A stretch of DNA of 57,591 nt from the NCBI GenBank assembly GCA_004431415.1, contig QPMI01000487.1, positions 1 to 57,591 of the forward strand, given 5' to 3'. The notes beneath the pieces were generated by a model, which worked only from the letters and a program-made list of their open reading frames with translations, did not search any database and had not been told where the DNA came from. Below are positions 5,547 to 36,240 of this stretch, piece by piece. This stretch comes from Cyanophora paradoxa CCMP329 (taxonomy: Eukaryota > Plantae > Glaucophyta). The position numbers and the translations under genes are program-made. How positions within the stretch are numbered: the stretch's first letter is position 1; the number at the start of each line of letters is the position of its first letter.

Positions 5547-5599
5547 ATTTCGTTTTTATCTTCCGCTGAGAAATTTATTTTAGAAGAACGGATTATTTT

Positions 5600-6863: not shown

Positions 6864-6890
6864 TTTATTCTTTATTAATAGGAAATAAAA
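6864..6890. promoter_or_regulatory. 27-bp AT-rich, quasi-palindromic bidirectional intergenic region between the two penton genes
   Basis: CAT-TTTATTCTTTATTAATAGGAAATAAAA-ATG lies between divergent start codons. Confidence 0.5.
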
Positions 6891-7865: not shown

Positions 7866-7883
7866 AATAATCTTATATTACAA

Positions 7884-10800
7884 ATGAGTATCACGAATCT
7901 CCCCTTTATCACTCGGGAAACCTTGTATTTGGATGACGGTTTCGAGCTCAGCAGTAACATTACCGCTTCCAATGTGACCATATCTTCGAACCTTGTGGTA
8001 AAAGACTTTCTATTAAATCAGAGCAACCTTCAATATATTGATATCACCAGCAATCTCCCTTTTACCTATGGCACTGATAACTCAGCCCTCGTTATCTATC
8101 ATGGGGGCTCGCCTGTTGCATTCTTTGGCAGCAATTTCCCCACAGTGCGAACCTTTCAGCACGAAATCAATAAAGCCCGCCCCATCCCACTGACAGCTGT
8201 CGTCGAATGGGATCCTGTTAAATATTCGCAGAGCATCACAAGCAATATCACACTCACTCGACCACATTTAATTGAGGTCATGGGGGTCGACCTTGTAAAG
8301 GAGTTTTATAGTGAGCGATTCACAAGAAACGAGCGAGATGTAGCCCAGGATCTCGAAATCTCGGGTTTATCAATTGCTACCGCAGCAAACACGGCAGGGC
8401 TCGCTGTTTTAACAGGTGCAATCACCATCACTGATGCGATCATGTATTTATCCCGCGATTTGGTGCCTTTGCTCGATCATCAGTTTAATCTCGGGCAGTC
8501 TAACACTGATGCTGTTAAGAAATGGCTGAATGTGTATGCCTATGATGGGTGGTTTGATGACTTGCACACGACTAACCTTTATAGCACGACCTCAAAAACA
8601 AGTAACATAATCTTGCCTTTCAATCACTCAGTCCGACCCAGTGATTTACCCACTGATGAGAGAGCTCTGATCAGCTATAACGACTTTAACAGCAATCTTT
8701 CCCGCTCAGTTTCGCGGACTGAGACCTACACTGTCGAGGGATACCCTCAGCAGCTCGCAAATGGGGTCTATGTCGCTTATGTAGGCAAACCTACATATAC
8801 ATTCACTTGGGATCAGTTGGGTGTCACAGGTTTGGAGAGTATACCCACTGTTTCATTGGTGGATCACACAACTTATTATAATCCTATCACTAACAATAAT
8901 GAATCTAATAAAGCGTTTATCCAAAATGTCACCTCCACAGGGTTTCAGGTCTCGTTTGTCATTAACGAGACATACAATTTACTTATCATCCGAAACAACT
9001 CATTGAGTTCCGAAGCTACTATTAGTTTCACTCTCACCATCAATTACATTAGCCCTGTATTCGATAGCAAACCCAGAGTAAAGGTTTACCGAGATTTACA
9101 AGGTAGCAATATCGTGCCCTTCTCACAGAATTTCGATCTTGGGCGAATTCTTTAAGGTGGAACACAGTTTATACTTTGAGTGCAAACACCTGTAATATTG
9201 TGGTCGCAGGATCATCGGCTACTATTGGAGAATTGACCGCCCCTTTTAGAAAGGAGTTTCTCAAAGAACTGTATATAACGAAGTCTGATTTACCAGATGC
9301 TATTTCGTTGGTGCTCTCCCCAACTCCCAGTATATCCTATCACAATGTGAAAGACACCAGTAATGTAGTGCAGAGGGGAAGCAAAGTATTCCAGGCATCC
9401 GAGATATCAGCAACAACATATAGATACCTTGCAGCGGTTCCAGCGAATTTTAATTTCACATTTGAGACACCATTTGTTTCCCCTCCTACTATTGAAATAA
9501 CTGACACGAATTTGTATGTGGTAAATGATGGGTCAGCTACATCACTTCAAAATGCACCAGCCGGCTACTCTCCATTTGTCGCAACAAATATAACAACAAC
9601 CGGCTTTACACTTGTCGGAAATGCAACAGTGACATATGCTCTGACAGCATATCCTGTTGGGTTGTATTTTGCGAAATTTAATCTTTCAGCGATCCCACCT
9701 GTGTCCCTTTCTCCTCCCTTTACTATAAGTTGGAAGGCAACAGGAACTATTCCGCGATTCGACCCCGAAGACCGCTTGAAAATTAGGTATCCTCTCGATG
9801 TGACCGACCTTCATACTACGAGAATCAATGGGCAGAATTTCGTATTTAATGGAACCAATGCAACTCTGATCGATAATCGAGTAACGAATAATTACTTTTT
9901 CGATTCTCGATATATTAATACTTGCAATATTGTCATACAGAACACGTTTGAGAATCGAAGTAAGACCTTATCAGTCACCTTGCCCACTCACTCGAATGTC
10001 TCAGATGGATTTCACTATTATCTTTTCAATCGCAATTACACCTCATATATTCCATACCCTTCTGAGACTGTCAACATGAGCTATCCCAGAGTCACCCTTA
10101 CATCGACCAATGCTGACTTCTTTGGATCCACGGACTTTATGACCTTCTTTGCTTTCACATCCTCTACTGATGGGCTCTTAGTTTATTACACTTTCAAATC
10201 TGATACTGTTGCTACCCAGATTGAAAGCCACCCAAACACTGATATTATCACAGTAGGCGATAAGAAATATATAAAAACCGCTTCCCCATGGGTTTGCACT
10301 GTCCGGCTCGATGACAGATACACTCCTAACCTAAATAGCATTGGAATGCACTCGACATGCAATATTTATGTGCAAGGTGCAATTTCAGCTTCAAAGTACT
10401 TTGAGGGTGGGAACTGTGATGCAGCCCATAGGTTGCTATCGAGAAATGGACTCTTTGAGTCATTTAGTGGGACAGCTCTACCGCCATTCATCAGGGACAC
10501 AGTCTATGATACAACATGCAATATTTGGGTGTGCCGATCTGTGAGCAATCCACCTGTAACACAGGAATTATACAGTTACCTCGCGAATAAGTATGGGGCA
10601 ATCACAGGGTCTTCAACAGGAAATCCAGCAACAGCTCCTATCGTGTTTGCAAATGCATACACAGCGCCAACCTCATTGGCAGGGTCGACAGAACCGCCAC
10701 CAAACGATCCCAATCCGAACCAGCCTAACCCAGATCCCGATTCAAAAGATCCCCCTACAACTGATCCAGATCCAAACACGACACCTAATAATCCCACTAA

Positions 10801-11125
10801 TCCTACAAATCCAGTCGGAGCACCCGGAATGGATCCAGGAACGTTAGTGCTTCTCATTCTCTTGCCGATTCTCGGTGCTCTTGGACTTGTGCTTGCATAC
10901 AAATTCCGAGCTTTATGTTGTGCTTGCATAGACAGAACCATTGCAGGTGCAGGTAATAAATACTCGGTGCCAGAAATGAATGTGACCCAAACAGCCGAAG
11001 GAGATGTGGGGTTAGAGGTGAGGTCAGCCGAGGGGCATGGTCTTAGTGTTGTGAGAACTGATCAACCACCAGCAAGTAGGGCAGCACCCAAAAATCGCGA
11101 GCAGAACGAATGGCTGAATCAATAA
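7884..11125 (+). CDS. Large fibre/adhesin-like protein with C-terminal TM anchor (ORFs 7884-9155 and 9176-11125 joined by one frameshift)
   Basis: One extra G at ~9141 gives FDLGANSLRWNTVY, echoing the earlier FNLGQSN....KWLNVY motif. Also lectin-like beta modules (FETPFVSPPTI...NITTTGF...ISWKATG), a PNPNQPNPDP linker and hydrophobic GTLVLLILLPILGALGLVLAY. Confidence 0.7.
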
Positions 11126-11234
11126 TAAAAGATAATGCAGACTTTATGGCGGAAATTGCACAACGAGAGGGCAGAACATACGAGCTTCTCCCAATGCGAC
11201 CCTAATTTTTGTAGTATGCCTTAATAGAGAAATA

Positions 11235-12698
11235 ATGACGGAACCCATAGTAGAAACGACAGTAAAGAATGCTGTATTGGATAATCAATTTTATATAACC
11301 CATGGCAATATACCCAGTGAATCCAATGACCTAATTGTTAATCTAAAAGGCTATGTGATGGGAGCTATGGCTTCTAACCTATGGAATGACCTTTTCGGTT
11401 ACGAGTTTGGTCACATCTATGACATTGCAAATGGGATCGGCTATGTGGATGCAATGGCAGGCACAGCCTTTCGCAATTTAAATTGCAACTGTGTGGGTGG
11501 GTGGATGTTTCAGATCTGTTCAAATGTCGATCCTACTATTGATCCCGCCACTGTGACCTTTGATTGCAATCTGTATGCCCCCAAAACCATTTTTTCTATC
11601 ACTTGCAATCTCGTTAATTCGGATGTGCCCATAGTAGCACCTGTAATAGGTGCATCAAATATGTATATCCAAAGAAATCCGGTCGTGCATACAGGCGCCG
11701 AATTTATATTAGGCGACAACACCCCAATTAGTCGACTCGAATTGCCCACGAATTTCACCTTTAATCTCGTGGATGAGTTCCCTAACAGTCAAAGTCTCAT
11801 GTATTTCACCTCTGAAAATCGCCTTTCGGGTGCATTCTCGCCCATCGAGCTCTCTATACCGAAGCAAAAGGTGAGCTATAAAGAGCTTACAGATGTGCCG
11901 GCGGGTTTTAGTGGGAAGTGGAGTGATATCATTCAGAAGCCGACTTGGAGTAGTGTAGCATACACAGGAAATTACTATGATTTAGTAGGAACTCCCGATT
12001 TCACAAGCTATATACCTCGTTGGATCGATCAAGGTGTAATTATATCAGAATCTACACTCCCTTTCAATGGGACATGGGATAGGTTATTTACTAAGCCGAA
12101 TTTGCATGCTGTTGCCACAAGTGGTGACTACAACGATTTAACTAACACCCCCAATGCACCGACCTTGCATGCTGTGGCTACAAGTGGGAGCTATACAGAT
12201 TTAGTTAATACACCTAACCTCCACGCTGTGGCTACAAGTGGAAATTATGATGATCTGATTAACACACCTACTTCGCCACCCACTCACAATCACAGCATAG
12301 AGTTGCTCACGAATTTCGGTAGTTATGTGAATCCAAATGCATATGTGCAACAAGGGACAGCGAATGTAGTTTTGGAAAATAGAATATACAATGCAGGAGA
12401 GACCTTTCAGTTATCGGGAACGGTCGTATTCTCTACCCCATTTTATAGTGATGCAGTGATTACTACCTCTATCGAGAATAGCTACAACTCTGTAAATTGG
12501 GAAATGACCAACTGTGTGTATATCGGACCTGAGTATGTTAATAATGAGAGAGTAGGACTAAAAACTAAGTTTACATGGATCGTTAGATTCACAGCTTTCG
12601 CATCGACTAATTTCACAAATGTCACAGCAGCAAATCGCACCCTTAAACTCCATTGGATTGCTGTCGGACCTCTCCAAAACAATAATATTCTCACATAA
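11235..12698 (+). CDS. Fibre protein with LHAVATSGxYxDLxNTP repeats
   Basis: Three near-identical shaft repeats at ~12100-12270 plus a degenerate copy. C-terminal VVFSTPF...LHWIAVGP resembles tail-fibre tip modules. Confidence 0.8.
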   Translation: MTEPIVETTVKNAVLDNQFYITHGNIPSESNDLIVNLKGYVMGAMASNLWNDLFGYEFGHIYDIANGIGYVDAMAGTAFRNLNCNCVGGWMFQICSNVDPTIDPATVTFDCNLYAPKTIFSITCNLVNSDVPIVAPVIGASNMYIQRNPVVHTGAEFILGDNTPISRLELPTNFTFNLVDEFPNSQSLMYFTSENRLSGAFSPIELSIPKQKVSYKELTDVPAGFSGKWSDIIQKPTWSSVAYTGNYYDLVGTPDFTSYIPRWIDQGVIISESTLPFNGTWDRLFTKPNLHAVATSGDYNDLTNTPNAPTLHAVATSGSYTDLVNTPNLHAVATSGNYDDLINTPTSPPTHNHSIELLTNFGSYVNPNAYVQQGTANVVLENRIYNAGETFQLSGTVVFSTPFYSDAVITTSIENSYNSVNWEMTNCVYIGPEYVNNERVGLKTKFTWIVRFTAFASTNFTNVTAANRTLKLHWIAVGPLQNNNILT

Positions 12699-12719
12699 TA
12701 AGTAAAGAACAATCAAAAG

Positions 12720-13721
12720 ATGTCGACTGTATTCACACCTGTGTTTTCCTTATCAGCCAGTGCTGTCCATAATGTGCAACACACAGTCTATGATTTATCT
12801 CCGAGCCACCCTTCGACTGAGACAGCGAAAACCGATTCTTTTAATGACCAAAGCATACTCAGAGTCAAAGAACTCAGAGCTGACAAGATTGATGGACTCG
12901 TTAAAGCTACTCAAATGATCGTATCGAATCGACCCGCAATCTCTTCGGGGCTGGTCACCAAAGAAAATCTATATGAAGGTCAACAGGATTCCAAAACGGC
13001 TTTTAATCCGGCTGATAGGAATTCGGCGGCTTTCCAAGTTTACAGTGGCGGGGCATGGATTGGGACTGGATTGGGAGTGAATGGGAATGCGACAATTACA
13101 GGAAGCCTTACAGCTGGATCATTTGAAACAGTTAAAACGACGACTATTGATTCTGGGGCGAACACAGAATTAGTAATTAAGCGAAACAATGAGAATATCG
13201 CTTCCACATTTGTAAACAGCTTCACCAATTCAACAAGTGGGGCAGTTGCTGGAACTTACAGCTGGAAAGGTCTTACAGTCAATGGGACAAACTCTTATCT
13301 TGGGACTCCAAACCATCCTCGATTTTGCTATGGATTAAATACAACAGTAACATCAGCTGCAATTATCAACGCATGGGGGCATATCATTTTAGGATCAACA
13401 TCATTTTCGAATGGAGTATTCACAGCACCCATAGGAGGACATTACAGGTTCGTTTTCACAGCAATGACATCAAGATATGATACAGGAAACACACATGTTA
13501 TTTTACAAGTAAATGGTGCAGATACAGCAGTGAATGCATTAGTAGGTGTTGTAACTAATGCAGATGAATATAGAAGATATCGCTGTCTCGGTTTCAACAC
13601 TATTCAATCACTTAGTGCAGGTGATAGTGTGCGACTCAGATTAGCATTGGGTAGTCAGCTTTATGGTGATGCAAGCACTGCATTTTGTCAATGGTCAGGT
13701 GAATTAATTTCGGCAATATAA
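12720..13721 (+). CDS. Fibre protein with C-terminal C1q/TNF-like head
   Basis: FSNGVFTAPIGGHYRFVF...LQVNG...SLSAGDSVRLRL...CQWSGELI matches the C1q consensus. Confidence 0.8.
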   Translation: MSTVFTPVFSLSASAVHNVQHTVYDLSPSHPSTETAKTDSFNDQSILRVKELRADKIDGLVKATQMIVSNRPAISSGLVTKENLYEGQQDSKTAFNPADRNSAAFQVYSGGAWIGTGLGVNGNATITGSLTAGSFETVKTTTIDSGANTELVIKRNNENIASTFVNSFTNSTSGAVAGTYSWKGLTVNGTNSYLGTPNHPRFCYGLNTTVTSAAIINAWGHIILGSTSFSNGVFTAPIGGHYRFVFTAMTSRYDTGNTHVILQVNGADTAVNALVGVVTNADEYRRYRCLGFNTIQSLSAGDSVRLRLALGSQLYGDASTAFCQWSGELISAI

Positions 13722-13729
13722 GTAAAAGA

Positions 13730-13993
13730 ATGTCGAACATCTACCAAGTGGTTCTAACTGATACTGAAAAACTCGGAATGGAATACTGTGCCTACTCTGT
13801 TCAGGATTGGATCGATAATGCTGCTCATAATAGGGCGAGAATCGCGATTGATGAGATTGTGGACAAAGAAGTTAAATCGTGTATTGCTGCTGGAATTCCG
13901 ATTCCACTCACAAAGGAAGCGATTGTAGAGCAAGCGTTTAATCGGGGGACTGTTCGAAAGGCAAGCGAAATTCCTGTGAGTGCTCCTATGTAA
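13730..13993 (+). CDS. Small hypothetical protein (possible fibre-associated chaperone)
   Basis: 87 aa, 8 bp after the C1q gene; VQDWIDNAAHNRARIAIDEIV. Confidence 0.7.
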   Translation: MSNIYQVVLTDTEKLGMEYCAYSVQDWIDNAAHNRARIAIDEIVDKEVKSCIAAGIPIPLTKEAIVEQAFNRGTVRKASEIPVSAPM

Positions 13994-14157
13994 AGAGAGA
14001 TGGGTTTATTGTTATTTTTCATAGATCATGCATAAGAAAGGCATGTATCTTGCATAGTGGGCGGGGCGCACTTATCCCCTTCGTATCCACTTCGTATCCA
14101 CTTCATATCCACTTTGTGTTCACTAAATTATATCGCACTGATTCAGTTTGCATTTTG

Positions 14158-15180
14158 CCCCCACCCTACACCCCACCCTATACTACAATCTCGTTATTTC
14201 TATACATATTTACTATCTAATTTAATAGAGTTTATACATTGAAATAAGTGAGGTGTATCGATAAGTAATACAGGGTGGGGAGGGTGGGGTTGGGTGGGGT
14301 CTTTTTTGCCCAAAAATATTTGACCCCCAAAAATTTAAGGGATTCAAAAAAATGCCCCACCTCACCCCACTTACCCCACCCTATCGAAGTCCGCACGATA
14401 TCATAGTAGGCTACATCGGGATTGCGATCATATCACAGTGTATACAGTGAGGGTGGTGCCCCACTTTCTCACCCCACCCTATCGATTCGCGATTCAGGGA
14501 TCGCGAAATATACAGCACATGATACTTGTTTTTCTTAGTGATCGCGCCGTTCTAATACGATCTGAATATATCATATCTCGTCGGTATCACGTCGGTTCAA
14601 TATCGTAATTATTAAATGGTTGGCTGATACCACTTTCACACCCCACCCTCACACCCCACCCGGTATTAATTTAACATACATAATCTCTATACTTTATACA
14701 TTAATTACATTGAAATCAATCATAAATATAATAAAAGATACAGGGTGGGGTAAGTGGGGTTGGGTGGGGTCTTTTTTGACCAAGAATTTTTGAGGGGGAA
14801 TTATTTTAGGGAATTCAAAAAAATGCCCCACCTCACCCCACCCGCCCCACCCTATCGAAGTTATCGAAGTCCGATAAGTATCAAACCGGAAGTAAAAATA
14901 ACACATCATGATTTTATGTGTGCCATCTTAGATTGGACTACCATACCGATACCACTCACACCCCACCCTCACACCCCACCCAGTATTAATTTAACATACT
15001 CAATCATACATATTTATATTTAAATTACATTGAAATCAATCATAGATAAAGAGAATAATACAGGGTGGGGTAAGTGGGGTTGGGTGGGGTCTTTTTTGAC
15101 CAAGAATGTTTGGGAGTGAAACATTTTAGGGAATTCAAAAAAATGCCCCACCTCACCCCACCCGCCCCACCCTATCGAAG
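14158..15180. repeat. Three ~120-bp G-run/C-run palindromic units plus CCCCACCC iterons (subterminal/TIR or origin-like region)
   Basis: Units at ~14271, 14741 and 15061: GGGTGGGG..GTGGGGTTGGGTGGGGTCTTTTTTG...CAAAAAAATGCCCCACCTCACCCCAC..CCCCACCC. Period is 320 bp between copies 2 and 3. Confidence 0.9.
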
Positions 15181-15500
15181 CTACGTAGGTGATACACATG
15201 ACTATATGAGGCGCGTCCCAAGCAGCACATTGTAGTTGTTTTAGATACACATCGCGCATCGTAAACACATATCGGCTATATCGCGATTACATATTATATA
15301 TACATATTTTACAAAGATTCCACGATACTTATATTATTTTTATTGATTCATTTACGAACTACCGATAGAATACATATCACATATCGATATACACTATGAT
15401 AAAAATGCTAATATCTTTATATAACTTATAGTAACACACATATAAAAACAAATATTATTATCCTGAGCGGAACGCGAGGGATAATAATATTTGTTTTTAT

Positions 15501-16018
15501 ATGTGTGAGGAAGAGGCAAGAAAGACCAAGGTAGAGACAGAGTACCAAGCATTGAAACGGGAGGCCAATCAACTGTTAAAAAGGAGGGGAAGGGCCTACG
15601 CCGACGAGGGCGCGGGCGTGGGCTCGGCCAGCCCGGACGACATCACCCTCGCGGAAAGGGACGACGTTTCCGTAGAGGAAATGCGCCCGGGCACAGCTCG
15701 CCTGCCCTCCGAGGGCGTATTCCAGACGCTCGACAGGCGCGTGATGGGCGACTCGGACGTTATTTTGCGCAACGCCCTCATGCCCTACGGCGACTGGAAC
15801 CGCGCCACCGCCGACGCCCTCGCCGATTTCGACCTCGAGCGATTTACCACCAAAGAGCAGCGCGACGCCTTCCTGGCGCGCCCGAGGGCAAGGCGACCCG
15901 GCGTGGCAAAGGAGGCCTTCAGCACCGAGACCCTCTTCTCCGCGATGGGTACGGCGAACAACGATGGCATGTCTTTCGGGGCAGCCGATTTATTTCAGGG
16001 GGCGGGCATCGACTTGGT
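15501..16018 (+). pseudogene. 5' half of a GC-rich gene disrupted by the retrotransposon
   Basis: Reads ...DLFQGAGIDLV up to the left TSD; the same frame resumes GIDLVGAGLGG at the right TSD. True start uncertain: the first ~95 bp differ in composition. Confidence 0.8.
16003..16018 (+). repeat. Left target-site duplication CGGGCATCGACTTGGT
   Basis: Identical 16-mer at 31601-31616. Confidence 0.95.
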
Positions 16019-16497
16019 TTTTTTTTTTTTTTTTTTTTGGAAAGCCTGTTGCATTCGTACACACTTGACAACAGTCCCCCGCTCCTCGCCTACCGGATAC
16101 TGGGATGCTGACTGCAGGAGGAGATAGATGACAAGAGTGCTACAGCTAGTAGTCGTGTCGAGCTGGTGCTTGAGCTGTAGTCTACCGAGTCGCCTCCAGA
16201 ACATAATATGCGCCGGTCCTCTAGCAGTGAGCGCGGCATTATGAGCTGCACGGTCCTAGATGCCCGCTTGCTGTCTCGTAGAACTTGGCCGTGGTGCGCT
16301 GTGTCCTATCTAATAATGGGGGAGATGCGGTAGGGGAAGAGGGTCCGCGGTGTCGTCGCGCCCGTCGTCGTCGCCGCCGTTCGAAGTCCAGCTCCGACCA
16401 GTAGGACGAGGCGCCGCGCTCCGAGACCTGCGCCACCCCCCCCCCCTCCCCCTCCCCCCCCCACCCTTCCCTCCCCCCCTCCCCCCGGACCTCCTCG

Positions 16498-19400
16498 CTA
16501 GCCCCTGTATTTCAGGATGTCGTGCCCCGAGGGGTCGACATGAAGGAAGTGATATGTAGCTGACAGGCGCAGTGATGAGCTGAGTAGTTGGCGGGCGTGT
16601 CTGGAGGGGCAGAGCAGATGTGGGAGACGGGCCGGGCCTGTGGGGGTGATCGCGCCATGGTGGATGCGGCGGCAGCCGCACGTTGCGCACATGTCTGGGA
16701 GGTATTGGAGTATGCTGCCGGGCTTTCGAGGTCTGCGCGGCTTCGGGGAAGGCGTCGGCAGTGGCGTCGGCGGCAGCGGCGGCGGCCGGGGCAGCGGGGG
16801 CAGCTCTTCCAGTCGGGCTGGCTGTCGGCGTCGGAGTTTTTTCCGGGGTTCCGAGGTTGCCTGGCCCGCGGGGGCGCGCACGCTAGGCGGCCGCACCGTA
16901 GCTTCTGCCATCGGTTTCCATTCGCCTGGGGCAAAGAATTTAAAGATGGAGCCCTCAGGGAGCCCTGGAATGGGGTCCGGTGGAGAGGCTGAGGCGTCAC
17001 GCTTGCCGCGTTTCTGTCCTGGAGGCTTCCGAGGGGCCGGGGCGTGTTTGCGTTTGCTGCTCAGCGGCTCTGATGGTGTTATCTCTGGGCGACGCTTGGC
17101 GCTGGGGGCCGGGGCTGCATCGTCATCCTCCACCGTACGTTTGGAGCCAACGGGTGGGGGCTTACTGGTGGGCGGTGGCGGGTGCTGCGGGGCCCCGTGC
17201 TCGTCTCTGAAGCGTTTAGCTGATGTCGGGGGTGCTGCGGGCGTGGCCGCAGGCCGTTTCACTACGCGGGCGGGGGGCTGCGGGGGGTATAGAAGGGGTA
17301 ATTCCAAGTCGTTCGTCGAGGACGTGGGCTGGGAGGGGCTAGGATTGCGGACTAGGTGGAATCCGACTCCCGCTGCGCTGTCGATGCAGAGACCTGTAGC
17401 GAGGTGGCGGAGGCACAGGCGGGCGGAGGCAAAGCTTGCCCCGCAGGTGTCGCAGCGAGGGCGTCGCGCTTCGAGTTCGCGGAGGCGGGCGCTACGTCGG
17501 GGGGGCTGGCTGTCCTGATGCTGAGCTGGGTGCTGACCGGGTTCCTCTTCCAGCTTCTTCCAGGTGAACGCCGCCAGCTCGGCCGCCAGGGCAGGAGCTG
17601 CCCCGCCGAGGTACTCCGTGATCGTGACTTGTTGGCGTTCGAGCGAGGGGCACCGGGTAGTCGGGGTAAGAGGAATTGGAGCCGGGGCTGGAGTAGGGAC
17701 CTGAGCCATCATCGAGGCCTTGGTCCGCTTGGTGCGTTTTTTTCCCGGCGTGATGCCGTGTTCCTGTTCCCAGGCTATGACTGCGTCGCAGCGGGTTTTC
17801 CAGATGCTCCGTGCATGCTCGTCCGCTAGTTGCACCAAGCCGTTCACTGCTTGCTTCGAGGTCGTGGCTAGAGCTCGAACTCCGAATGCTCGGAGTAGGA
17901 CGTGAATTCCTTGCGGGGCGACTAGCTGGAAGAGAGCTCGAAATTCGAATTGGTGAAGGAGGTCAGCTGCTTCGAGAATAGCTAGTTTTTGGCCCAGTGG
18001 GCAATCCGGAGCGAATTCGAGCGGAGGGCTGGACATGCCGGGGTCTAGTAGGAAGGGGAACAGCGCGTCCCAGGAGCTGCGAAGTCCCGTCGGCTTGTGT
18101 TTCATCACATGTTTAAGGACGTGCTCGCGGGCGGCTAGGCGGAAGACGTTGACGGCAGTAGCGGCAGCAGGGCATACCCAGATGTGATCGAAGTCTTCCT
18201 CTGCGAGGCGGCAGCGGGGGCAAATTGGTCCCTCGGGGCAGATTGCCGCATAGATGTCCGGGCGCGTGCGAGCACGGACTCGCAGCGTGGCCAAAGATGC
18301 AGTCAGCAGTTTTGAGCGCGTCGCGCGAAGCTGAACCCCGGCTTGGGTCTTGCGGCGTCCATCTTTGCGGTGTGCAGACATGAGGGAGAGAGCGGCGTCG
18401 AGTTGGCCGCCAGTGAAGCGCAGGAGTCTACCAGCTTCGAGTTGACAGCTCCACTGAATGAAGTCCACGAGCTGGGCTTCCTCGTCCATGTGTTTGCGCG
18501 GGTCTCCGTTCACGCGGTACGCCAAGAGGTGGCCGGCGTATCTCTCTGTGCCGGTCGGCAGCTCCGCAGAGCCAGACTTAAGCTTGGTGCCATAGCGGAT
18601 AAGCGGGGTAGTAGACCCGCATCCTGCGGGAAGGTATAGGAGGGCAGGGCAGGGCCCATCATTGCAGCTTTTCGCGAGGCGATCGGCCTGGTCGTTGTAG
18701 CAGTCGTACGCTGGATTGGGTACCAGTTCCGCTCCCGGCGCCCGGCGGGCTCGTGCACGGTTTTTCTTGGTCGGGTCAGGGGCAGGGGCCGGTGGGGGCG
18801 GTTTTGAGTTCTCTTCGGCGAGGGTAGCAACCTCAGCGGCACGGAGCGATGTCGGGCGGGTAAGGTTAGAGAGAATTTCGGCGCGAGGCAGATGCAGCCT
18901 CCGTTCTCTTTGTAGTTTTCCTACAACCTGGGCGAAGGCAGCTTCGTCTGATTTTGGCGGGGGTCTGCTGCCGGGTCTGGTAATGTGATGAGCGTTGGCG
19001 AGGGAGGGCGGGAGTGAGCCGCGAGGGAGTCATCTTCGCTGTCGCTCGCCTGCGATTTGCCCTCAGGTGTGAAGCAGGTCTCGCCGTCGTCACCGATTTC
19101 AGAGTCAGGTGGCGTCGGCAGCGTGCCACCGCGGTGCGAGGTTCGCCGGCGCCGACTGCCGAGCGTTGGAACAGAGGCTGTTTTTGGAGTCGCAAACGCG
19201 AGCTGATCCGAGGGAAAGGGTTCGGGGCCTATTTCAGTGGTGCCGAGGTAAAGGGCAAGTACAATGAAATGGGTGTAGGTCCGTAGTCGTTCCGGGAAGT
19301 CCCGAATGAGTGTGCTGAGGCGCTGCGTCGACGGGTCTCCAGAGAGGACGTAGGCTGTCATGAGAAGAAGGATCCCGCAGGAGGAGCGGTCGATCTGAAT

Positions 19401-22400
19401 GGGTCCGTCGCAGGCATCTGTCGAGAAGGATGTCCATAGAGGCGGGGCGAAGGGTTCGTCATCCCGTCGAAGCCAGATTCGGACAAGGTCAAGGCCTAGG
19501 GCAGTCCGGTCGGGTCGGCTCCGGTTCCCGCCGTCGTAGATTCGGATCGAGCGTTGTCTGGGGGCGATGAGAAGGAGGACCCAGTGGTCGGCTGGGTCGC
19601 CTTCCCGGTGCGGGAGGCGGGACGGGACCAGAGCGGGGAAGAAAACCATGCGATACGACCGTAGTGGTCGTGGTGGCAGATAGTGCAGTGTTTGTGCTGG
19701 GTTAAGAGTATGGGGTTGGGCGCCGACACCAGCTGTGGAGATTGCAGTGGGGAGGAAGCAGACGTCGCCCCCGCGGCACGCCGGTCGGGCTGCCAGGACG
19801 TCGAGGAAGGCATCGACCACCCGATCCGGGACTCCACGGGGAAGAGCGTTAGCGATAGTCCTATAGCTAGTTCGCCCGCCGCTCGGTGCAGGGGGTAGGT
19901 CTGTGTATAGGCAGGCAAGGTCTGCAACGTAGAGCGCCGGGGCAGGCGAGCGGGATGGTCGGCTCTCCGGCGTAGTGTGAGCTCGCGGGTATCCAATGAC
20001 GGCGTGTTCCGCTGCGTGGTCACCTCGGTTGAGGGCTGGGCCCCAACTGATGCGGATTTGGGGAAGCAGGGCTTTCTCGGCCTGCGAGAGAGCTCGAGGG
20101 AGGGGCGGCACACGGGTGGTAGCTGAGGGCTCGTCGCCAATGTTTGCACAGATGACACCGGTGGCAGCGTGGGAGGAGGCATTGAGTCCGCTGCGGGCTC
20201 TGGTGAGGACGTGTCGGCGAGCTTGGGTGCCGATGCAGGGCTAGGTGCGGGTGGCGACGGGAGCTCCGGTTGTAACGTCGTCACAGTTGGCGGGTCCACG
20301 GCAGAGTGGTGGTCATGAGTGGGCCCGGACCAGTCAGCGGGAAAGGAGGGCTTCGTTGGCTTGTAGCCTTGTCCAGTGAGGCTGAGATCTGAGAGGTAGA
20401 GAGCAGCGGCGTACCGGAGCCGGATTGCCGGGAGAATTGTGCGCGATAATTTGCCGGGGGCAGTCCCAGTCATGCGTGAGATGTAGCCCGATGCAATGTA
20501 GTCCGCGGCCGCCAATACTAACAGGGCGTCTTCACCGTGTTCTGCACCGGGCCAGCTCGGCGAGTTGAGGGTGCTAGCATCGCAGAACCAGCGAGGGCAT
20601 TGCGGGGCTGGGCCCCCGGCTTGCTCCTGCCATGCATCTGCCCAGGCTTGAAGCTCGGGGAGGACATCGGAGCAGGGCGTGTGGGAGCCGTCAATAACCC
20701 TTATAACTCGGGTGCGTGGAGAGATAAGCGCCAGGCGCCAGTGGCGAAGGAGTGCTCGACCATCAGGCCCAGGGATGGGCGGGAGGGGGAGCAGGAGGTA
20801 GTCAACGTCGTTTGGGCGGAGGGTCGCTTTGTTTGAGCAAATGAACTCTGGAGGGCAGTCGGGGTCCAGGAGGGCCCGTCTGGCTGCACGGGGAGAGACG
20901 AAAATGCAGCTGGGGAGGCCCGGCGTCCGTGCCCGTTCCTGCGCAGCTCGGCGGGCGACAAGGCGGAGGAACGCAATTACGTGCTGCTCGTGAAGGGGCA
21001 TTTCTTGTAAGAGGAGCGCAGATGCGGCTTCATGGTCGGAGAGCGTGAGGGGGTTACGCATAGATGCCGCCTGCACTTGCTGGCGTAGAGTTGGCGGTAG
21101 CGGCGCGGCGCGGAAATTTGGGTATGCGGCTGAGACCCCCACGGTGGGCGGTGGCGGATGGTATGCACGGATTGCGTCTGCTTCTGTGAATTTGCCATGC
21201 GAAGGCCGTTCGGGCAGAATTGGGCTGGGAGTGTTGGGCAGAACTGACGGGTGGCATAAAGTGCAGAGGGGGGCTGGGCCCGCTCGCCAATCCTGAAGTA
21301 CAAAATCAAGGGAAGTGCACGGGCGGTCCGGGTCGCAGCGGTGATACGCTGCAGTGGGGTCGTTGGGGGACAGGGGCAGGTCCTCGTCCCAGTGCCAAGC
21401 GGGGTGCTCAGCCGGGAATGAGCCATTTTCAGCCATCTGCCATCGAGACGGCGAGGCGAGCCAGGTAGTCTGGTCGCGCCGGGCCCCAGTCGAGGACGGA
21501 GGGCCAGTGAGGGGGTAATCCCGGCGTGCATTCGCGCGGACTGCGAGTGCATCCCAGTACTCCGTGCGTGACGGGCCCGTTGTGGGGAGAGACACATCGA
21601 CTTCTGGCCAGAATATTGGGTTAATGGGGGAAGTGCAGTGGAGACTGATACGAGTACGATACCGAATCGGAAGGGCGGCAAGCCAGGGTGCGTAGCGGCG
21701 TAGGAAGTCAGCTGGAGCTGTAATCACGAGAGACTTATCAGGCAGCATTCGTGTGTGGGCCCTCGGGATGCGGATAGCAGTTTCCCAGATTATGCATTGC
21801 TCGGCAGGGTGTGCTGCCAGATCGGGGGCAGCTGCAGCAAGGTCAAGTAGGAGGTGGTGCGGCGTTCCAAATTGCGCAAGTTCTATGATTTCAGGGTTCG
21901 CCAAGTATTGTTCGTATTCGCCAAGCGTTTGGGGGGCAATATAAACGTGGGCACGCCCCTCGTCATCTGGGGGCCCATCATGGAGGTAGGCAATGGGAAT
22001 ATTTAGTCCTCCATAGACACTGCGATATTCCCGGGCTGCAGCCTCCGATGGAGAGGGCTGGCTGCGTGGAGGCGGGGCGGGGCCAGGGCGCGCGACATAG
22101 GGGCGGGTGGCGTCGAAAGGCATACGTGGCGGGGCAGCTGCAGCCCTTGAGGGCTGGCGGGTTAGTGCCGGGTGGGTTAGTCGGGTCTCGAGCTCTGTTA
22201 TAGGGATGGTTTTCGGCTCGTGGGCTGGGGTCCAGGTTAGAGTCGGGAGGGGGGCGTAGCCAGCGCGTTCGCGGGCTGCAACAATTGCACGTATTGCAAG
22301 AATTGTGTCGCAGTATGGGCTGCGGAGAATTTTCCGAAGGAGAAGAGGGCATCCCGTGAGGCAAAAGCGCAGCAGAATCGAGATTGTGCCTTTGCTGTCT

Positions 22401-25400
22401 AGGGTGAGGGTGCCTCCCTCCTTGCCGAGGTACGTGAGCGCGAGCATGACAGCCTCGAGCTCGCCGAGGCCGATGTTATATTGGACTCCACTGACACGAG
22501 CTGAGAAAGTAACTGTGGAGAGCAGCTGAGGGTTACGGGCTGCAGGGATGACAACTCCAAACGTCGTTCTGACTGTGGATTTCCCTGCGTGTCTAGTGCT
22601 CCCGTCTGTCCAGATTGAGGTCGCGAGGGCATCGGATGCTGGCGCGTGTGTAGCCTCGATCACCCGAGCTAGTGCCGCCGGCGGGTTCGTTGTGTTCCGG
22701 TGGGCCGATGGAATAAGACATGGATTTAGGTCTTCACGTCGCGCGGAGGGGAGGGGCTTTGCTTCAGCCACGTCGAGCTGCACTGCTTCGTCCTGGAATT
22801 CTTCCCACCAGGGGGCCAGCTCGAGCCAGATGGAGCGGGCGGCCCCCTCGGGTACTTCGTAGTAAATCGAGCGGGGCTGTGCGTGTACCTCGGCGCCCTC
22901 TAGATCTGAATCCGAGTCGTGCACCGGCCGCGGGGGCAGGGATCGGATTCGGCGTGGGCGGGGGCCGGAGGCTAAGCGGAAGTCTTGGCGGTTCGTCGGA
23001 AGCCCGACAAAGGCTAGCTTTTTGTTTAGCCTTGCGAGCCGTTTCTGTGCCGCAGTCGAGAGTCTTTGGGTCGACGTCGGGTTTGCAGGTGGGAGAGCTT
23101 CAGAGGCGGGCTTGTTTCGTTTGTTGAGCGCCCGTGGGGGGACAAACGGCCCGTCGGCTGCACGACGAGAGCGCTTGGAGGGATGCCCCGGCGGTCCTGC
23201 ATCAGCGATGCGGGCCACTCGTACATGGGTGGCCCATTCGTGCCATTCGCACACATCAGTAGCCAGGCCGAGGTGCTTGTGCAGGCCAGCGCTGCCGCAG
23301 TATGATGGCGCTGGACAGGGGACGAAGCAGGCCTTTTCGTCATCGGTCCCTGCGATAATTTCATTGCGTTCGCGGAGCTCAGAGTCGTCGAGCCGCCAGT
23401 GGCGCAGGTGAACCATGTAGACCTTTTCAGTCTCCGCTGTTGCCTCTGGATCAAGGTTCGCAGCCTCCGGGTCTGCTATCAGGGGCGTGGATACGACCTC
23501 GGCTAGGTAGCCCGCTGAAGTCCAGACCAGTGTGCCGGGGGTGAGCTTGGCGATGAGGGGGCTAGCGCGGACTGCTTGGCGAATATCAAGGGGACGGGAG
23601 AGGAGGGGCATGCAAAATTCTGCGCGGATCGGGCGGGGCCAGGTGGGGCCCTCCGCTTCGTCAAAATGTGCGCGTTCAGACAGTTCTTCACGTAGCCAAT
23701 CCCACCATTCCGGCTGTTTGCGTTTTGTGTAGGGGACGCGGCAAAGCTGCCAGAGCTCTGACCAGGTTGGGATGCAGACTTCGCCATGAATCTGAACTGT
23801 GATGTGGGCCATCGTGAAGAGGCCACATTCCATGAGAAAAACGCCAGCCTTGGCTAGAAGGGCGGGAGAAAGTTGGGAAGCCAAGATGAACCGACGGTCA
23901 AGTTTAGCTTCTGTCCCTGAGAGGCCTAGCACCCATCCGTTCGCTGCAAACGTCGTCCAGTTGGCGAAGGCATGATCAGACGCGGCTAGAGCCCGTGTAA
24001 TGGACAGGCACAAATGTGTGTCCTCTTGCCGGGAATTTGGTGTGAAGTTCGAGTATTCGTAGGGGAGCAGGCAGAGCCCGTGTCGGGCTTGGGTATCCAG
24101 TATGCGTTGGCGGTGGAGCTGTCCAATGAGGGAGTCCGGGAGAAAATAAGCTGTCTCGAGCCGGAGCCGCTCGTCGAGTGTCTGAGACTGGAGCAGGAGC
24201 GTGGAGACATGGCGCAGCTGGTAAAGAAGGTAGAGTGCTGGTGTACTGGTTGACTTAGCGTGGCCTGCGGCGTGTCTAAACACTTCGGACCAAACTCGCT
24301 CCAGCTGTGCACAGCGGGCTGCACTGAGCGTCATGATTCGCATCGGGTAGGCCAGTTTAGGATAGATAACGCGGTGTAAAACAGTGCGAAATTCGTCAAC
24401 GGAGAGATATTTTGGGCCGAGGAGGTGCATTGCGGTGCGTGCATGTGAGAGGAGGAGGCGAAATTGGTGCCCCCAGTCAAGCGATGCTGTGAAAAATACT
24501 CCAAGGATTCGGAAGGCATCATTTGGTTGATGGATGGTGCCGATGGGCTCGGCTTGGGGTCCCAAGCCCACTTTGATCGGTGCAAGTGTAATCGGGCGCG
24601 ATGGCCGCCAGTCCGGTCGCCAGAAAGCTACCTCGCTCTTCTTTGCATTCAGGCGGATGTTATGAATGTGTAGGAATTCTGAGAGCCACTGGAAGAAGCG
24701 CTGGAGGGTGTGTGGGGAGTCTGCAAACATCGTTGTATCGTCCGCGTAGGCCAGGATCGATAGGAACGAGCGGGGCCCAGCTGGAACTTTATAGGTCTCC
24801 CCGGGTCGCGCGGCGCCTGTGGTGCCTGGGACAAAATCACGGAGCTTCCCGGAGGAAGTACCTGGGAGGGGGCCCATGCGGTACCCAATATTGGCTGCCC
24901 GTGCTTCTTCATCGATTGCTGTGAGCACCGTGTCATAGAAGATGCGCCAGTGGAGGGGGGCTTCAATCCCTCCCTGCGGCAGGCCGCAGCGAACTTGGAA
25001 CCATTCTGTGCGGCCATGGGGCGTAAGGATGGCGGCCGTGCGGTGTCGAGCTGCGTAGGCGTGGAGTTGGATGTATGCGCGGCCAGCCGGATGCTCGTGC
25101 ATGCGTAGCCGGCGGAAGCTGGCTTCCATGCTTTCCCAGGAGACGCTGTCGTACGCGCTAGCTATGTCACCGAGGCCAATGTATATTGGTTTGCGGTGGT
25201 CATGGGCGTCCTCAAGGGCTGCGCGGACCGCGTACAGGACTGGGTCGGTAGATTCGTGTCGACGGAAGCCGTAGTTGGGTCCTCGCAGGATCTGGTGGTC
25301 TTCCAGACGGGAATCGAGCCTGTCGGTGAGGATGCCCGTGACTAGCTTCCAGAGAACTTCCTGTAGCGTGATTGGGCGGAGGGATCCTAGATCAGTAGCG

Positions 25401-28400
25401 TTGTCGCGTTTGGGGATGGTAAAGACCTGTCCGCGGAGAAGATGGTCGCATATATGGCCTTCAAGCGTGGCTTTGACGATCGCCTTTATGACCTCGCGGG
25501 AAGTGGTCCAGAAGTCGGTACTGGCCCATGCATCAACTTCGGCGTGGCTGTGCTTAAGGGTGAGAAGCTGACGATCAGCTTTTGAGAGGTGCGGGGGGAA
25601 GAATATCATTTTAAGCATGCCATTAGTGAGACCCGACGGGCCGCCGGCTCCGTCTGATGTGGCTGCAAGGCGGGCTGAGAGTTCGCGATCTTCTGGCATG
25701 TCCGTCATGCCGTCGAATGCAGCAAGCTGAACGTGTGGGAGGGGTGCATATTGGCGGATCCAGTGTTCCGCGCGTTCGGGGTGCAAGGCCAGGCGAGCAC
25801 GGATGCGCTCTGGTGTGACGGCGGCATCACGTGGGTACCAGAATCTCTCGTCGAAAAATTCTTTATATTCGGTCAGCACCGCTTGCGGCGCCGTTATGAC
25901 GTGCACGATGCCGTCCACCAGTTTTGTGAGGTACGGCTTGACAGTGCTTCTGAATTTGTCGAACAGAATCTGGATCGCTTGCCCCATCGAGGACGAGCGG
26001 GAGAGCATGTGACGTCGGGCATCGATGTCGCGGGATAGTTTGTCGGTCTGGAAGCCCCGGCGGTGTGCATCAAGAGCTGCCATATTTCGGTTTGTCCAGG
26101 AGGTTAAAGCTGCGAAGTAGCGCGACCAGCATTCTTCAGGAGTCGCACGGTCGGAGGCGCCTGGGAAAATTGGGGCAGCTTCTAGGGGGACGGGGTAGTA
26201 ATGGAATTCCGTCTCTGGGCGCTGGGCTACTTCAAAATTATGGAATTCAATCGTCTGTTCGAGCTGTGTAAGGTAGTGTAGTGGGGAGGATCTGGAGCCG
26301 TCGGCACTGTCAGGAGCTAGTGCCGGTGGGGGGCCGGACGTGTCGGCGTGGCGTGCCCAAGCTGAGAGGCATCCCTGGACCTGAAGCAGGATGCCGGAGT
26401 CCTGGTCCTTCGCTCCTGGGGTGAATATGCTGGGGGTCCGGTCGCGGCGCTGGCGGTATTGGAGGAGCTGGGCCTCACTGAGGTCGGGCGACTCGGCCGC
26501 GTATTTAACCGCTTCCACGAGGGCGTGCATGAGCGTGCGGACTGCCCGCTTGACCCGCCTAGGGTAATTTGGATGCGTCCGCTGTTGTTCCGTGGGGCGG
26601 AGGATGAGGTTGACTTGGTGCGAGGATCGGGCCAGCCAGGTCTGGACGTGCATCTTTGCCCTGACGCGCGTCTCGGCCGGTTGCGCCAGGTAGGTGAAAG
26701 CTGGGGGAAGGGGCTGGGTTTGAGGGCGTACGCTGGGGCGGACCGCGTTCCCTTCGTTGTCTAGCGAGGGGAGAAGGCCCTCGATGTTGAACGAGGTGAT
26801 CACGGGGAAGTGGTCAGAGCGGATTGCAGTCAGGACTCGGGCAGTGTAGAGTGTGCGAGTAGCCTGCATGCGCGCTGCCAGAGCTTCGGATGCAAGGATC
26901 CCGTCCAGTCGCGCAGCCGTGTGGAGGCGCTGCGGGGCTGGGGTGTCTGGGCCTTCGTTCTGGGGCCGAGCAGCTTTAACCCAGGTTATATCGCCTGGAG
27001 TACCGAGGTCGATCAGCCGCCAGTCGTGGAGCAGCGTTGTCCAGAAATCCCGCTCAGGGGCTGATTTGCGGGCTCGGGCCGTGGAGATGCGGTCGCGGCG
27101 AGGGTCATGGACCGCATTGAAGTCACCCATTAGCACCAGTTCGGTATGTTTGAAATCCTTGTGTCGCCAGTCATTCAGGACAGTTGTCGTTAAATATTCC
27201 ATGACGTCGTCTAGTTCGCTCTGGGGAAGTGAGCGATGAGGCATGTACACGTTCAAGACAAGGAGCCGCTCGGCTGGAGATTTCTGATAGAGAACGCCAG
27301 TTAGACGGCCGGGGACCGCATACGTTTTGACAATGTCGTGTTTGAATCGGTTGTGCACCCAAAGGGCCACGCCTTTGCCTCGTCCGGCCTCGTCGGCGTT
27401 GGTGGGGCCTGAAACGTAGAGAGTGCCCTCGGGGCGGATGCGGTGTATGGTGCGTACAAGTCCTTGCATTCGTGCGCCTGGCAGGCTGAGTTCTTGGAAA
27501 GCTACGAAGTCCGCGGCCCAGGTCCCCACGGTTTCGTTGAGGGCCGCTAGGAGGCGGTCTGCCGGGTCACGTAAGGTCTCGAGCAGTCCCTGGACATTCC
27601 AAGTGACGCAGCGAATCTCAGAGTTGAGCCGTGGGCAGGCCGCAGAGGGGCTGCTCGAGGTCCGGCCCCGGAGGACGAAGCGGCGCTCATCGGTCGAGCG
27701 AGGGTATATGGCGGTGTTCTGATAGAAATTAGGCGGGTACAGGTCCGCAAGCGAGAGGGGGGCTTGAGGCGGCGGCTGGTCGCTCGCAGGGGCGGGGTCG
27801 GTGCTGTCGTCGTTTATAATTAGGTCTCCGGATTCCGGGGGGTCCGCTTCGAGGTCCCCCCACGGCGCTGGTAAGGGGCCGGCGGGGGCGTCGCTGTCAG
27901 AGGAGTGAAGCGTGGCCATGTCCGAGTGCCAATCGTCGGCTGAGAGGCCTTGTTCTCCGCTTGCAGAATTGAGGAAACCGGGACGCAGCCCTGCAAAGGG
28001 GCGGCGCGCCGTTTTAGTCGGGGGCGGGTATGAGGGGCCGGCGTCGTCGGCGTCGGCCGCATTGTCTACGTCCGTGTCCGTGTCCTCGTCTTGGTCTGGC
28101 CATGGAGAGATCGAGATCTCGGGGGGTGCGCAGTCGTCGGGGTCCGAGTCGTAGGGCTCGAGATCTGCGGATCCAGACGCCCGCGGTCGGGTGTCGACTA
28201 GGTCAGGGAGTTCAGCTTCGAAATCGGCAGTGTCACGTGCGGCGAGTGCGGTGGCCATCGATGCTGCTGCCGGTATAAGCAGGGCCGCGGTCGCCGACGA
28301 CGGGCCCGCACACGTCGATTCAGGGCAAAATGCTGGGGCTGCGAGAGATGTCTCAAACAGGAGGAAGAGTATTAGCAAGGATAAGAGGCGCCTGCGAAGT

Positions 28401-31400
28401 GCGCTGTGCGTCAAGCATGCGCGGCCGACAGCGTGTGTCCGGTTTGGAGTACTACAGTGGGGCGTGATTCGGGCGGCGCTCATCGTGAAGGCTGCGGCGA
28501 GCATTGTCGCAGCATTCTGGGCATCACCAGCAATTGCTCTTGCCAGGGAGAGGCTAATGCGGAGGGGGTCCCGCAGCGGGGCCCAAGCCAGCACCGTTAT
28601 CACGTCTCCTGCTGTAAGAGGTCTCAGGGGGGGAGGGCGGCGAGGGCGTGGCGCCCGCAAGGCGGGACAGGGGCGCCGCGGGCTCCTAGGGTAGAGCAGC
28701 CTTGTGACCGCACGGGCGGCCAAGCGACGTGCGAGGAGCACGAGCGTAACGCAGGCGTAGAGGAGAAGCAAAATTGTCCAGGTTATCAGTGCACTGAGGG
28801 CGTAGGCGGGGAGCGTGAATGCTAGGAGCAGCCCGATGGCGACTGGGACGAGCAAATTCTGCGCCCTTGGCGCAAGGAGGCGTAAGCTCATCGCCGCCTG
28901 TGCAGAGGCCAGGGCGGTCGCGGACACTGCAAGGATGGCTGTGAGGCCGGCAAGAGGCAAGAGTCCGTAGAGGACTCGCGACGGGAGGCCAGCGTCCAGC
29001 TTGGAAACCGCTGAGCGTGTGCACGCGCTGGCGTGTACGGCGCCTTTCTGGAATCCGAGCGCAATGTGTCGTCGGGCAGCCGCTGCGAACAGGGAGGCGA
29101 GCTCGAGGAGAGAAGTGGCTCGGTTTAGGCGTCGGCTGAGGGCCACGGCCGCCGCATCAGTGAGTCGCCAGCGGCGGCGCCATAGCTTGGTCAGGGACCA
29201 GAGTAGGTGGTCCCAGGGTGAGGGGCACCAGTCTGCTTTGGCTTCGCGGGGCCGGGGGCCGAACCAGAGGGCGCTGCGAGGGGGGTTGAGAGTGGCTCTA
29301 ATCGTGGAGCGGATAGAGCTGCCGAGGCGCCGCAGCCTTTCAGCTCCCTCGTCGATGCCTGCCAGCGGGGCGAGAGCTACTAGAAGAAGGAGGAGACCCC
29401 CCAGGGAGAGTCCGGTCCGAAGATGGGAGGCCGCGGGCTTGCGAGGCAGGTCTCTGGGCGGGGAGAGGAGTAGCTGCGCGCGGCGAGGGGACAGCACTTG
29501 CAGGCGGAGGGTCGATCCGTGCCCGTCCTGTGCCTGCAATTGTGCATGTGAAGTCATCAAATTCATCGATATAGGTGCGTCCGCGTGGAGTAGCCCGAGC
29601 AGCCGGCTAGAGAAGGAGAGCAGGAGCTCATTTTCGAGGCTGTCCCCTACACGGGCTTGAGAGGAGAGGTACAGCAGAAGACCGTATAGGCGGAGCATCG
29701 CGGGCAAGATCTCGAGGGCGACTATATATAGAGGCGTCGAGTAAAGAGGCCGGGCAGTATCCCGGGGGCTACGGGCTTCAGGGCGGGGATGGTTGCTGTA
29801 GCTACATTCGTGAGCCGAGCAGTGAAAGTCTGGCCGAGGCCTCCGACTGGTGGTGTACTCATGCATGCGCACGTGTTTGTGCCCGCCTCGAGTTCCGGTG
29901 CCAGCGCGCACGCCATCATCCCAAAGGCCTGGCGTCGACGCCCAGGCCGGTTCTGTGAGCGTGCGTTCTAGTAAACAGGCTGTACCTAGCCCTGGCGCAC
30001 TAGAGCCAGTCTGCCTGGCATCTGGCATGTTAATGTACCGGGCTGACTGTGATTGGGGTTTGGCGAGCCAATCATGTGCGAGGGCGGACTCGGCTGGAAA
30101 TGAGTTTTTTTCTCGTCTGACCGATGCCTCCCGGTACACCCGGAACGCCGGCGAGGAGAGGGGGGGAAGAGGCGCACCCGGGGTAGGATCGAGCGGCTCG
30201 CCCGGGCGCCTGCATGTGCGCCAGCGTCGGCGGCCCTGTGCGTGTGGTGAGGCGCTCGAGCTACTTAGTAGCGCCCAAGTTAGCGTCTGGATTGCTGGGG
30301 TCCGTTCGGGCTGCTTCCGAGGCCCGTCCGCTGCAACCGCTGTCCGGGGGTCGTAGTAGCCTGCCCGGGCAGTGCATAAGTCATCTGTGCTCTCCTTGCC
30401 GAGGCTAGGCCGCACGACATGCGCATGACAGGGCTCAGTCGCAGTGTGGTGGTCATGCGCATGACAGGCGCGTTGCGACGGAGCGCACCCTCCCGCCTGC
30501 ATTGACATGTGACCAGCAGCTACGATGCGTCCGACGGGCTCTACTAGTGCCGAACGACGAGTTCCTGCCGGGGCACGCATCGCTTCGGGCGGTAGGGCCG
30601 ACCGCGCTGGAGGTTCGCAAGGTGCCGTCGAGCTCCGGACGGGCACCGTTTTCGATGCCAAGCTGAGCCGTACGCTAGCGCACTGGTCGAGGTGTGCGAC
30701 CGCCGGGGCAGGAGCGGCGGGGACCGCGGGCAGCTCCGTTGTAGGATTGAGCCGCGCGTGCGGGCGGAGGTGCGCAGCCGACGAGGCGGGAGCAGCTGGA
30801 GCACCCCGAGGGTGTCGGGCGGGCGAGGGCGACTGTTCGGGCGCTCGGCGGGGGCGCTCGGCGCTCCACGCTTCGTTCGCGATTACGGTGAGCGCCTGTA
30901 CGGTGGGCGCCGGGGCGGGGCTGACGGCTGCGCGCAGGTCCGGGCTTTCGACCGGGGGGGCGGAGCAGGCGGCGCTGGGGTTTCGGGCGGGCGCCCCGGC
31001 CGCCGCGGGCTGGGCGCGTGAGGCGGCAGGCGGAGCAGGGGTGCGGGGGCACGGCTCGGGCTTCGCTGCGGAGTCTGGGGCGGCGCTTTCCACCACCGTG
31101 AGCTCCTCGGCCTCACTGGGCGCCGAGGTTCCGCTGAGCGCAGCGCGTGGGCCCGGGGCGGGCTCCCTCGCAGTCATTGGCGGAGTGCGTGGCGTCCCCG
31201 TCGTCGCCGGGGCCTCGCTGAGCGCGACGCGCAGGTCTCTCGTCCTGGCCGGCTGGGCGGGGGCGACGGGGGCAAAGCGCGGGCCCTGGGCGGGCTCCCT
31301 CGCAGTCATTGGCTGGGTACGTGGCGTCCCCGTCGGCGCCGGGGCCTCGCTGAGCGCGACGCGCAGGTCTCTCGTCCTGGCCGGCTGGGCGGGGGCGACG

Positions 31401-31600: not shown

Positions 31601-31616
31601 CGGGCATCGACTTGGT
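31601..31616 (+). repeat. Right target-site duplication CGGGCATCGACTTGGT
   Basis: Identical to 16003-16018. Confidence 0.95.
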
Positions 31617-32394: not shown

Positions 32395-32702
32395 TTCGGT
32401 CGACCGATTCTGGCCCAAAATCAGTCGATCGACTGATTCTGTCGATCGACTGATTTTGTCGACCGATTCTGGCGCAGAATCAGTCGATAAAATTCGACTG
32501 ATTCGGTCGACCGATTCTGGCGCAAAATCAGTCGATCGACTGATTCTGTCGATCGACTGATTTTGTCGACCGATTCTGGCGCAGAATCAGTCGATAAAAT
32601 TCGACTGATTCGGTCGACCGATTCTGTCGCAGAATCAGTCGATCGACTGATTCTGTCGATCGACTGATTTTGTCGACCGATTCTGGCGCAGAATCAGTCG
32701 AT
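32354..32702. repeat. Three 107-bp tandem units built of TCGA palindromes
   Basis: Unit starts at 32368, 32475, 32582 (partial at 32689). Each unit contains AATCAGTCGATCGACTGATT. Confidence 0.95.
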
Positions 32703-36180: not shown

Positions 36181-36240
36181 TGGGGAAGCCTGCAGATGCT
36201 CGCTCTGTACCGTAGTACTCTTGCGTAGATCATCGGATAT

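Follow-up and report, generated by a model that had tools for sequence, protein, structure and literature searches.

Ulp1 domains are recurrent cargo of transposons, for which a part in SUMO-regulated repair or in anti-silencing has been proposed (PMC2836005, PMC13317346, PMC4640811). In the retrotransposons NeSL and Utopia-1_TSP they stand at the N terminus of the protein, and RNase H is known in several clades of long interspersed nuclear elements (LINEs) (PMC4640811). Here, we describe a LINE of the glaucophyte Cyanophora paradoxa CCMP329 in which a protease module is found within RNase H itself. The DNA analysed, hereafter the window, is contig QPMI01000487.1 of assembly GCA_004431415.1, positions 1 to 57,591 of the forward strand, and the LINE occupies 16019-31600 on the minus strand. 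The evidence supports an in-frame position of the protease module in the His loop of the LINE RNase H. The parts are known individually; their nesting is not previously described in the literature searched (mostly open papers, with Repbase outside the scope), where no element turned up whose RNase H is split or whose protease cassette is internal, as the original prediction, which knew of no such architecture, had anticipated.

Dualen and RandI LINEs resemble the C. paradoxa element in having a very long single open reading frame (ORF) with an apurinic-like endonuclease (APE), a reverse transcriptase (RT) and RNase H, and a cysteine protease domain has been reported in Dualen. The type and position of the protease differ in our element, and no restriction-like endonuclease was found after its zinc knuckle, which places it outside Dualen/RandI. 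The APE-type LINEs with RNase H (the I group, plant L1 and Proto1; PMC4640811) are alike in their APE, RT, D-E-D-H-D RNase H, CCHC knuckle, poly(A) and target duplication. In contrast to these, our element has one ORF of about 5,000 residues and no separate ORF1 was seen, the pieces of RNase H lie 1,170 residues apart, and C48 domains are present. NeSL and Utopia-1_TSP encode a Ulp1-like protease together with an RT of the non-LTR type (LTR, long terminal repeat) in one ORF (PMC4640811), but they have a restriction-like endonuclease and a separate N-terminal protease, whereas here an APE is present and a dead and an active protease domain are paired inside RNase H, so that membership of NeSL/Utopia does not hold either. 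Ginger1 and Mutator/KAONASHI/VANDAL likewise carry C48 as conserved cargo with no assigned substrate (PMC2836005, PMC13317346); these are DNA transposons in which C48 is terminal or a separate gene, unlike the C48 domains here, which lie within an enzyme loop.

The RNase H is in two parts, both on the minus strand. The N-terminal part (22220-22624) contains TDGS with D2990 at 22606, GELEA with E3038 at 22462, LDS with D3059 at 22399, and WTPAH with H3118, whose codon is 22222-22220. The original prediction had placed these motifs correctly, ending at about 22220, and had put the missing last helix some 3.5 kb downstream, where YNDQADRLAKS is indeed found (18664-18699), with Y at 18699, N4294 at 18696 and the fourth acid, D4298, at 18684, followed by a C-x2-C-x8-H-x3-C zinc knuckle (18172-18222, minus strand). 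The D-E-D-H-D residues D2990, E3038, D3059, H3118 and D4298 occur in order, and all are kept in P0001, an independent relative encoded as a single ORF of 3,720 residues on an 11.9-kb ENA metagenome contig. In HIV RNase H, 10 residues separate H539 from D549. This Asp of the last helix belongs to a set of four metal ligands, and its loss abolishes activity (PMC3488238). D4298 is presumably kept because its HIV counterpart is such an essential ligand. The His-to-Asp spacing is 1,180 residues in the LINE and 10 in P0002, a 2,528-residue JGI protein whose RNase H is uninterrupted. The pattern N-x-x-[AV]-D-x-x-A has a single occurrence in each protein, the 5,025-residue read-through and P0001, at the same aligned place; a closer equivalent following WTPAH, which would have undone the split, does not exist. 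When ungapped motif blocks are scored, the top score of the last-helix block within the window protein falls on 18664-18699; first rank goes to the first motif and the last helix alone, and to these in the window protein only. ESM Atlas features of the N-terminal part point to RNase H (0.92, recognition 3498, 164 shared features), with all ten of the best named matches being RNase H. We infer an RNase H fold from these motifs and language-model features.

The minus strand of the assembly shows three long frames, at 31573-19496, 20240-18921 and 19029-16498. APE and RT are the Pfam matches of the first, Peptidase_C48 that of the second. The last helix is missing from the list of translated ORFs because its stop-free frame begins at 19029, which is upstream of 18525, where the first start codon stands. 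Two -1 shifts separate the frames, each with one G absent from a G run, at 20113/20114 and at 18958/18959. Since both lie at G runs, they are of the usual long-read error type. In short-read contigs of three DNA runs from three studies (X1, X3 and X18), the extra G after 18958 is present at 100% of contig depth and that after 20113 at 78–89%. With the two gaps filled (X in the translation), a single ORF of 5,025 codons runs without an internal stop (16498-31573, minus strand), matching the prediction that the three ORFs are one frame of about 5,000 residues, and P0001 is likewise one ORF. Genuine breaks in the ORF are therefore rejected for the family. The contigs pool many copies, so that the read evidence describes the state of the family rather than proving that of this single copy, which could be privately broken. 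Divergent copies, 85–95% alike, are present in the contigs, and most of their listed indels are multiples of three. In a minor variant, at about 11–22% of contig depth, roughly 190 bases of the linker between the C48 domains (20116-20307) are skipped or replaced, with 20117-20306 missing. Across 20 public DNA runs of the one organism, 84–89% of sampled words of the stretch are present; next to none are present in four RNA-labelled runs.

Between H3118 and N4294, 1,175 residues are inserted in frame (18697-22219, minus strand), 1,170 above the usual 5. The insert begins with domain 1 (21584-21988, minus strand), an unnamed α/β domain for which ESM Atlas, fold searches with AlphaFold models, PHROGs and NCBIfam gave no family or fold match. 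It is followed by a His/Cys motif, H-R-C ... C-x2-C-H, a possible zinc finger (21239-21343, minus strand; HRC...CTLCH at 21343-21253), and by two C48-like domains, all flanked by linkers rich in Pro, Ser, Ala and Thr. The original prediction counted two Ulp1-like proteases. That description suits the second domain (19245-19907, minus strand), which carries H3997, D4014, Q4060 and C4066, scores 22.2 bits against Pfam Peptidase_C48 (cut-off 20.7) and matches the SENP1 profile at E 0.0012, with His, Asp, Gln and Cys all in register. The triad and Gln are invariant in P0001. The second C48 is intact as judged by its His-Asp-Cys triad, oxyanion Gln and family match. The first domain (20369-21046, minus strand) lacks the catalytic Cys and the oxyanion Gln in both elements, and in P0001 the His and Asp are lost as well, so that a pair of active proteases is rejected. 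Its weak match to the NopD C48 effector profile (E 0.02) and its hhalign match to the second domain (E 3.2e-5) point to a relation in fold; with its catalytic residues missing, it is a conserved pseudo-protease. The dead and intact copies probably arose by tandem duplication.

P0001 aligns with the LINE protein from APE through its final residue, with an overall identity of 33%. P0001 has the same split RNase H, with the four acids, the His and the last-helix motif; its insert is 1,171 residues long (an excess of 1,166). Conservation is highest in the last helix, at 74% (14 of 19 residues), as compared with 50% for RT, 41% for the N-terminal part of RNase H and 36% for APE. The insert domains are about as conserved as APE: domain 1 is 35% identical, the His/Cys finger 48%, the first C48 38% and the second 33%, with Pro-rich linkers at about 31%. 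Since so distant a relative has the same layout, the layout is an evolved design. The GC content and codon-position GC of the insert match those of its flanks, and a repeat comparison of the window shows neither inverted repeats nor duplications framing it. Among the 40 best-supported copy differences listed, 27 fall in the insert; 15 of these are silent, as against 27–34% expected, and 17 are at third positions (P 0.001–0.016). Because it is shared with P0001, conserved in its domains, enriched in silent changes and flank-like in base composition, the insert reads as an old, selected part of the protein. The original prediction spoke of a module grafted into the loop; the in-frame position in the His loop stands, but the direction and the donor do not follow, as wider searches turned up no close relative that lacks the insert. 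The insert-bearing family is rare in public collections. Beyond P0001, the wider protein searches gave only P0003, a 225-residue piece of domain 1 (E 2.3e-8), and two scans of JGI metagenome contigs and a tblastn search against phages revealed no further homologue. P0002 is the only other full-length match, at 24% identity. It has APE, RT, a PHD-like finger, the uninterrupted RNase H, a knuckle and a PD..E-x-K nuclease motif, and it looks like a Dualen-type LINE.

Several points weigh against the explanation that we propose below. The comparison holds only two full sequences with this layout, and the silent-change count comes from a selected subset of copy differences. The N-terminal part of RNase H is very divergent and lies below every family threshold: RNase_H is its sole Pfam match, at a non-significant E of 0.22, and neither phmmer and profile searches against the PDB nor hhalign with a local profile built from eight algal RNase H domains, all uninterrupted and LINE-type, gave a significant match. 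AlphaFold models built on two to three sequences had pLDDT values of 35 and 40 and were unusable, and fold searches with them were fruitless. As for the active C48, SENP1 is its best solved match, but a weak one, with SENP8 and bacterial CE-clan enzymes close behind.

The layout, its conservation and the selection on it form the established part of our explanation. The rest is proposed as follows. The APE-type LINE family would encode one protein of about 5,000 residues, with the cassette of unnamed domain, His/Cys finger, dead C48 and active C48 held in a surface loop that leads from the last strand to the last helix of RNase H. The cassette would loop out on its Pro-rich linkers, allowing the last helix to dock back on the core and supply the fourth metal ligand. 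Given the invariant ligands, RNase H may still remove the RNA template in target-primed reverse transcription. The active C48 would strip SUMO or another ubiquitin-like tag at the insertion site, acting either on host proteins of chromatin, repair or silencing or on the protein of the element itself, and the dead copy, by analogy, may bind the tag or the substrate. Taken whole, the proposal that the cassette loops out, that RNase H closes around it and that the protease strips SUMO-like tags from host or element proteins seems to us about evenly poised between right and wrong. The repeats of C. paradoxa are CpG-methylated and silenced (PMC12344493). Such silencing fits both the near-absence of RNA words and an anti-silencing role, and proves neither.

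The active C48 may instead be a polyprotein-processing protease that cuts the product of about 5,000 residues after Gly-Gly or a similar sequence, one conceivable place being the linker that precedes the final helix of RNase H. The pieces of RNase H, the RT and the knuckle part would then be released or rearranged, and RNase H could be turned on or off by the cut. This, the main rival, we consider possible but improbable. The product is unusually long, with predicted membrane segments near its N terminus from which the enzymatic part may need release, and RNase H has reportedly been reconstituted by combining its core with a last-helix peptide supplied separately. A Gly-Gly-Thr in the linker behind the active protease (19122-19130, minus strand) is a weak lead for a cut site: it comes a few residues past a GSRR shared by both elements, yet MAFFT does not align the two copies, and their occurrence is not beyond chance for homologous linkers. 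Within the insert and at its borders, the alignment of the LINE with P0001 matches no Gly-Gly, and processing leaves the dead C48 copy unexplained. We know of no non-LTR element that processes its own RT protein. The best precedent is pS273R of African swine fever virus, which has the SUMO-protease-family fold and matures viral polyproteins at Gly-Gly-Xaa; it is a stand-alone viral protein, whereas the C48 here is embedded and without common Gly-Gly sites (PMC8728581). Both functions had been suggested in the original prediction; because of the roles supposed for other transposon Ulp1 domains, deSUMOylation of host factors appears somewhat better supported than polyprotein processing. That a LINE matures its own polyprotein with a SUMO-protease-type enzyme inside RNase H, a cut in the loop timing or gating removal of the RNA template, is a doubtful idea.

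The divergence of the RNase H and the 1,170 residues separating its third and fourth metal ligands would also suit a protein that no longer cuts RNA, its halves serving to position the cassette, as a scaffold that is structural or binds nucleic acid, while host RNase H takes over, as in most LINEs without the domain. Four acids and a His that are invariant at 33% overall identity are hard to explain without catalysis, and we think this unlikely. Inteins often sit next to active sites, and this insert adjoins one; the original prediction raised self-excision, which could be intein-like or protease-driven and would have the RNase H halves rejoined. That suggestion fails on several counts. Neither border in either element has a Cys, Ser or Thr start or a His-Asn end before Cys, Ser or Thr, Pfam finds no Hint domain, the borders have no common Gly-Gly, and C48 enzymes hydrolyse and do not ligate. 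Self-excision is thus rejected on sequence, and we give it very little credence. An equally slim chance attaches to the insert being no part of the working protein, as an intron, a transposon nested in this copy or an assembly chimera. Both frameshifts of the assembly do fall in the insert, and one GT lies in the 3′ border region, by chance. Against this, a read contig crosses the 5′ junction (21837-22684) and no contig joint skips the insert, P0001 has it in one ORF with the domains conserved as protein, and the flank-like composition and lack of framing repeats are unlike an intron or nested element, both of which are rejected.

The remaining features define an APE-type non-LTR retrotransposon, with APE upstream of RT, poly(A), a target duplication, no LTRs and a C-terminal CCHC knuckle. 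The span of about 15.6 kb is full-length, its edges set by an A21 tail (16018-16038, minus strand), which stands behind a 460-nt 3′ untranslated region, and by a 16-bp target-site duplication, with identical copies at 31601-31616 (5′) and 16003-16018 (3′). The repeat comparison showed no terminal repeats around the LINE. APE is at 26776-27628 (minus strand; PF03372, E 4.4e-11) and the RT core at 24587-25417 (minus strand; PF00078, E 1.9e-20). The best solved relatives of the latter are the R2 and LINE-1 RTs; its scores against R2 exceed those against human L1 structures, from which a clade placement does not follow. Between RT and RNase H is a conserved unnamed region (23176-23656, minus strand), 30% identical to P0001, with C-P-x-P-x-x-C-G and W/H positions in common. 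Pfam gave no match for it; it is beta-rich in look, and our impression is of a possible Tudor/PWWP-like or zinc-binding module. The knuckle, whose ligands are kept in P0001 around a long insertion, has no Pfam match, nor have the last 843 residues, in which the two-sequence alignment has no shared PD-(D/E)xK; no restriction-like nuclease was found there. A long Pro-rich tail leads to an unnamed C-terminal module of about 70 residues (16498-16730, minus strand), C-x2-C-G-C-R-R-x-H ... I-S-A-T-Y-H-x-L-H-V-D, which is 41% identical to P0001.

Upstream of APE and in its frame, about 1,300 stop-free codons (27630-31573, minus strand) gave no family match. Five hydrophobic segments, the predicted membrane segments, lie near residues 720-1080; P0001 begins at APE and so is without them. 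The 5′ end of the LINE (31140-31602) has three 132-bp tandem units resembling the promoter monomers of some LINEs, and because the first ATG is inside these units, the true start codon is uncertain. The LINE splits a plus-strand ORF (15501-16017 and 31601-32394), the phases of which match across the target duplication. The insertion site is the right end of an AT-richer region (GC 0.40-0.49 over 1-15500) with a Pox_A32 packaging ATPase (2225-3055), which is probably an endogenous Polinton-like virus. A repeat array at 14160-15180, of a 171-bp family with GGGTGGGG boxes, and three 107-bp units at 32352-32702 flank the LINE and probably make up the terminal part of the virus-like element. Farther right, 33400-42400 is a large inverted repeat with arms (about 33409-35500 and 40300-42380) that are 99–100% complementary, enclosing 40-bp GC-rich arrays and four tandem units of about 720 bp at 36240-39010.

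The His loop of RNase H, in which ten residues ordinarily lead from the His to the last ligand, can hold more than 1,100 residues of folded domains that are under selection. Split domains escape domain scans, as Pfam misses this RNase H, and others may have been overlooked for that reason. If the protease does cut the element's own protein, we would know of no earlier LINE that processes a polyprotein. The family offers a testable case for why unrelated transposons repeatedly capture Ulp1/SENP proteases, one in which the protease, accompanied by a dead copy, is bound up with the replication complex.

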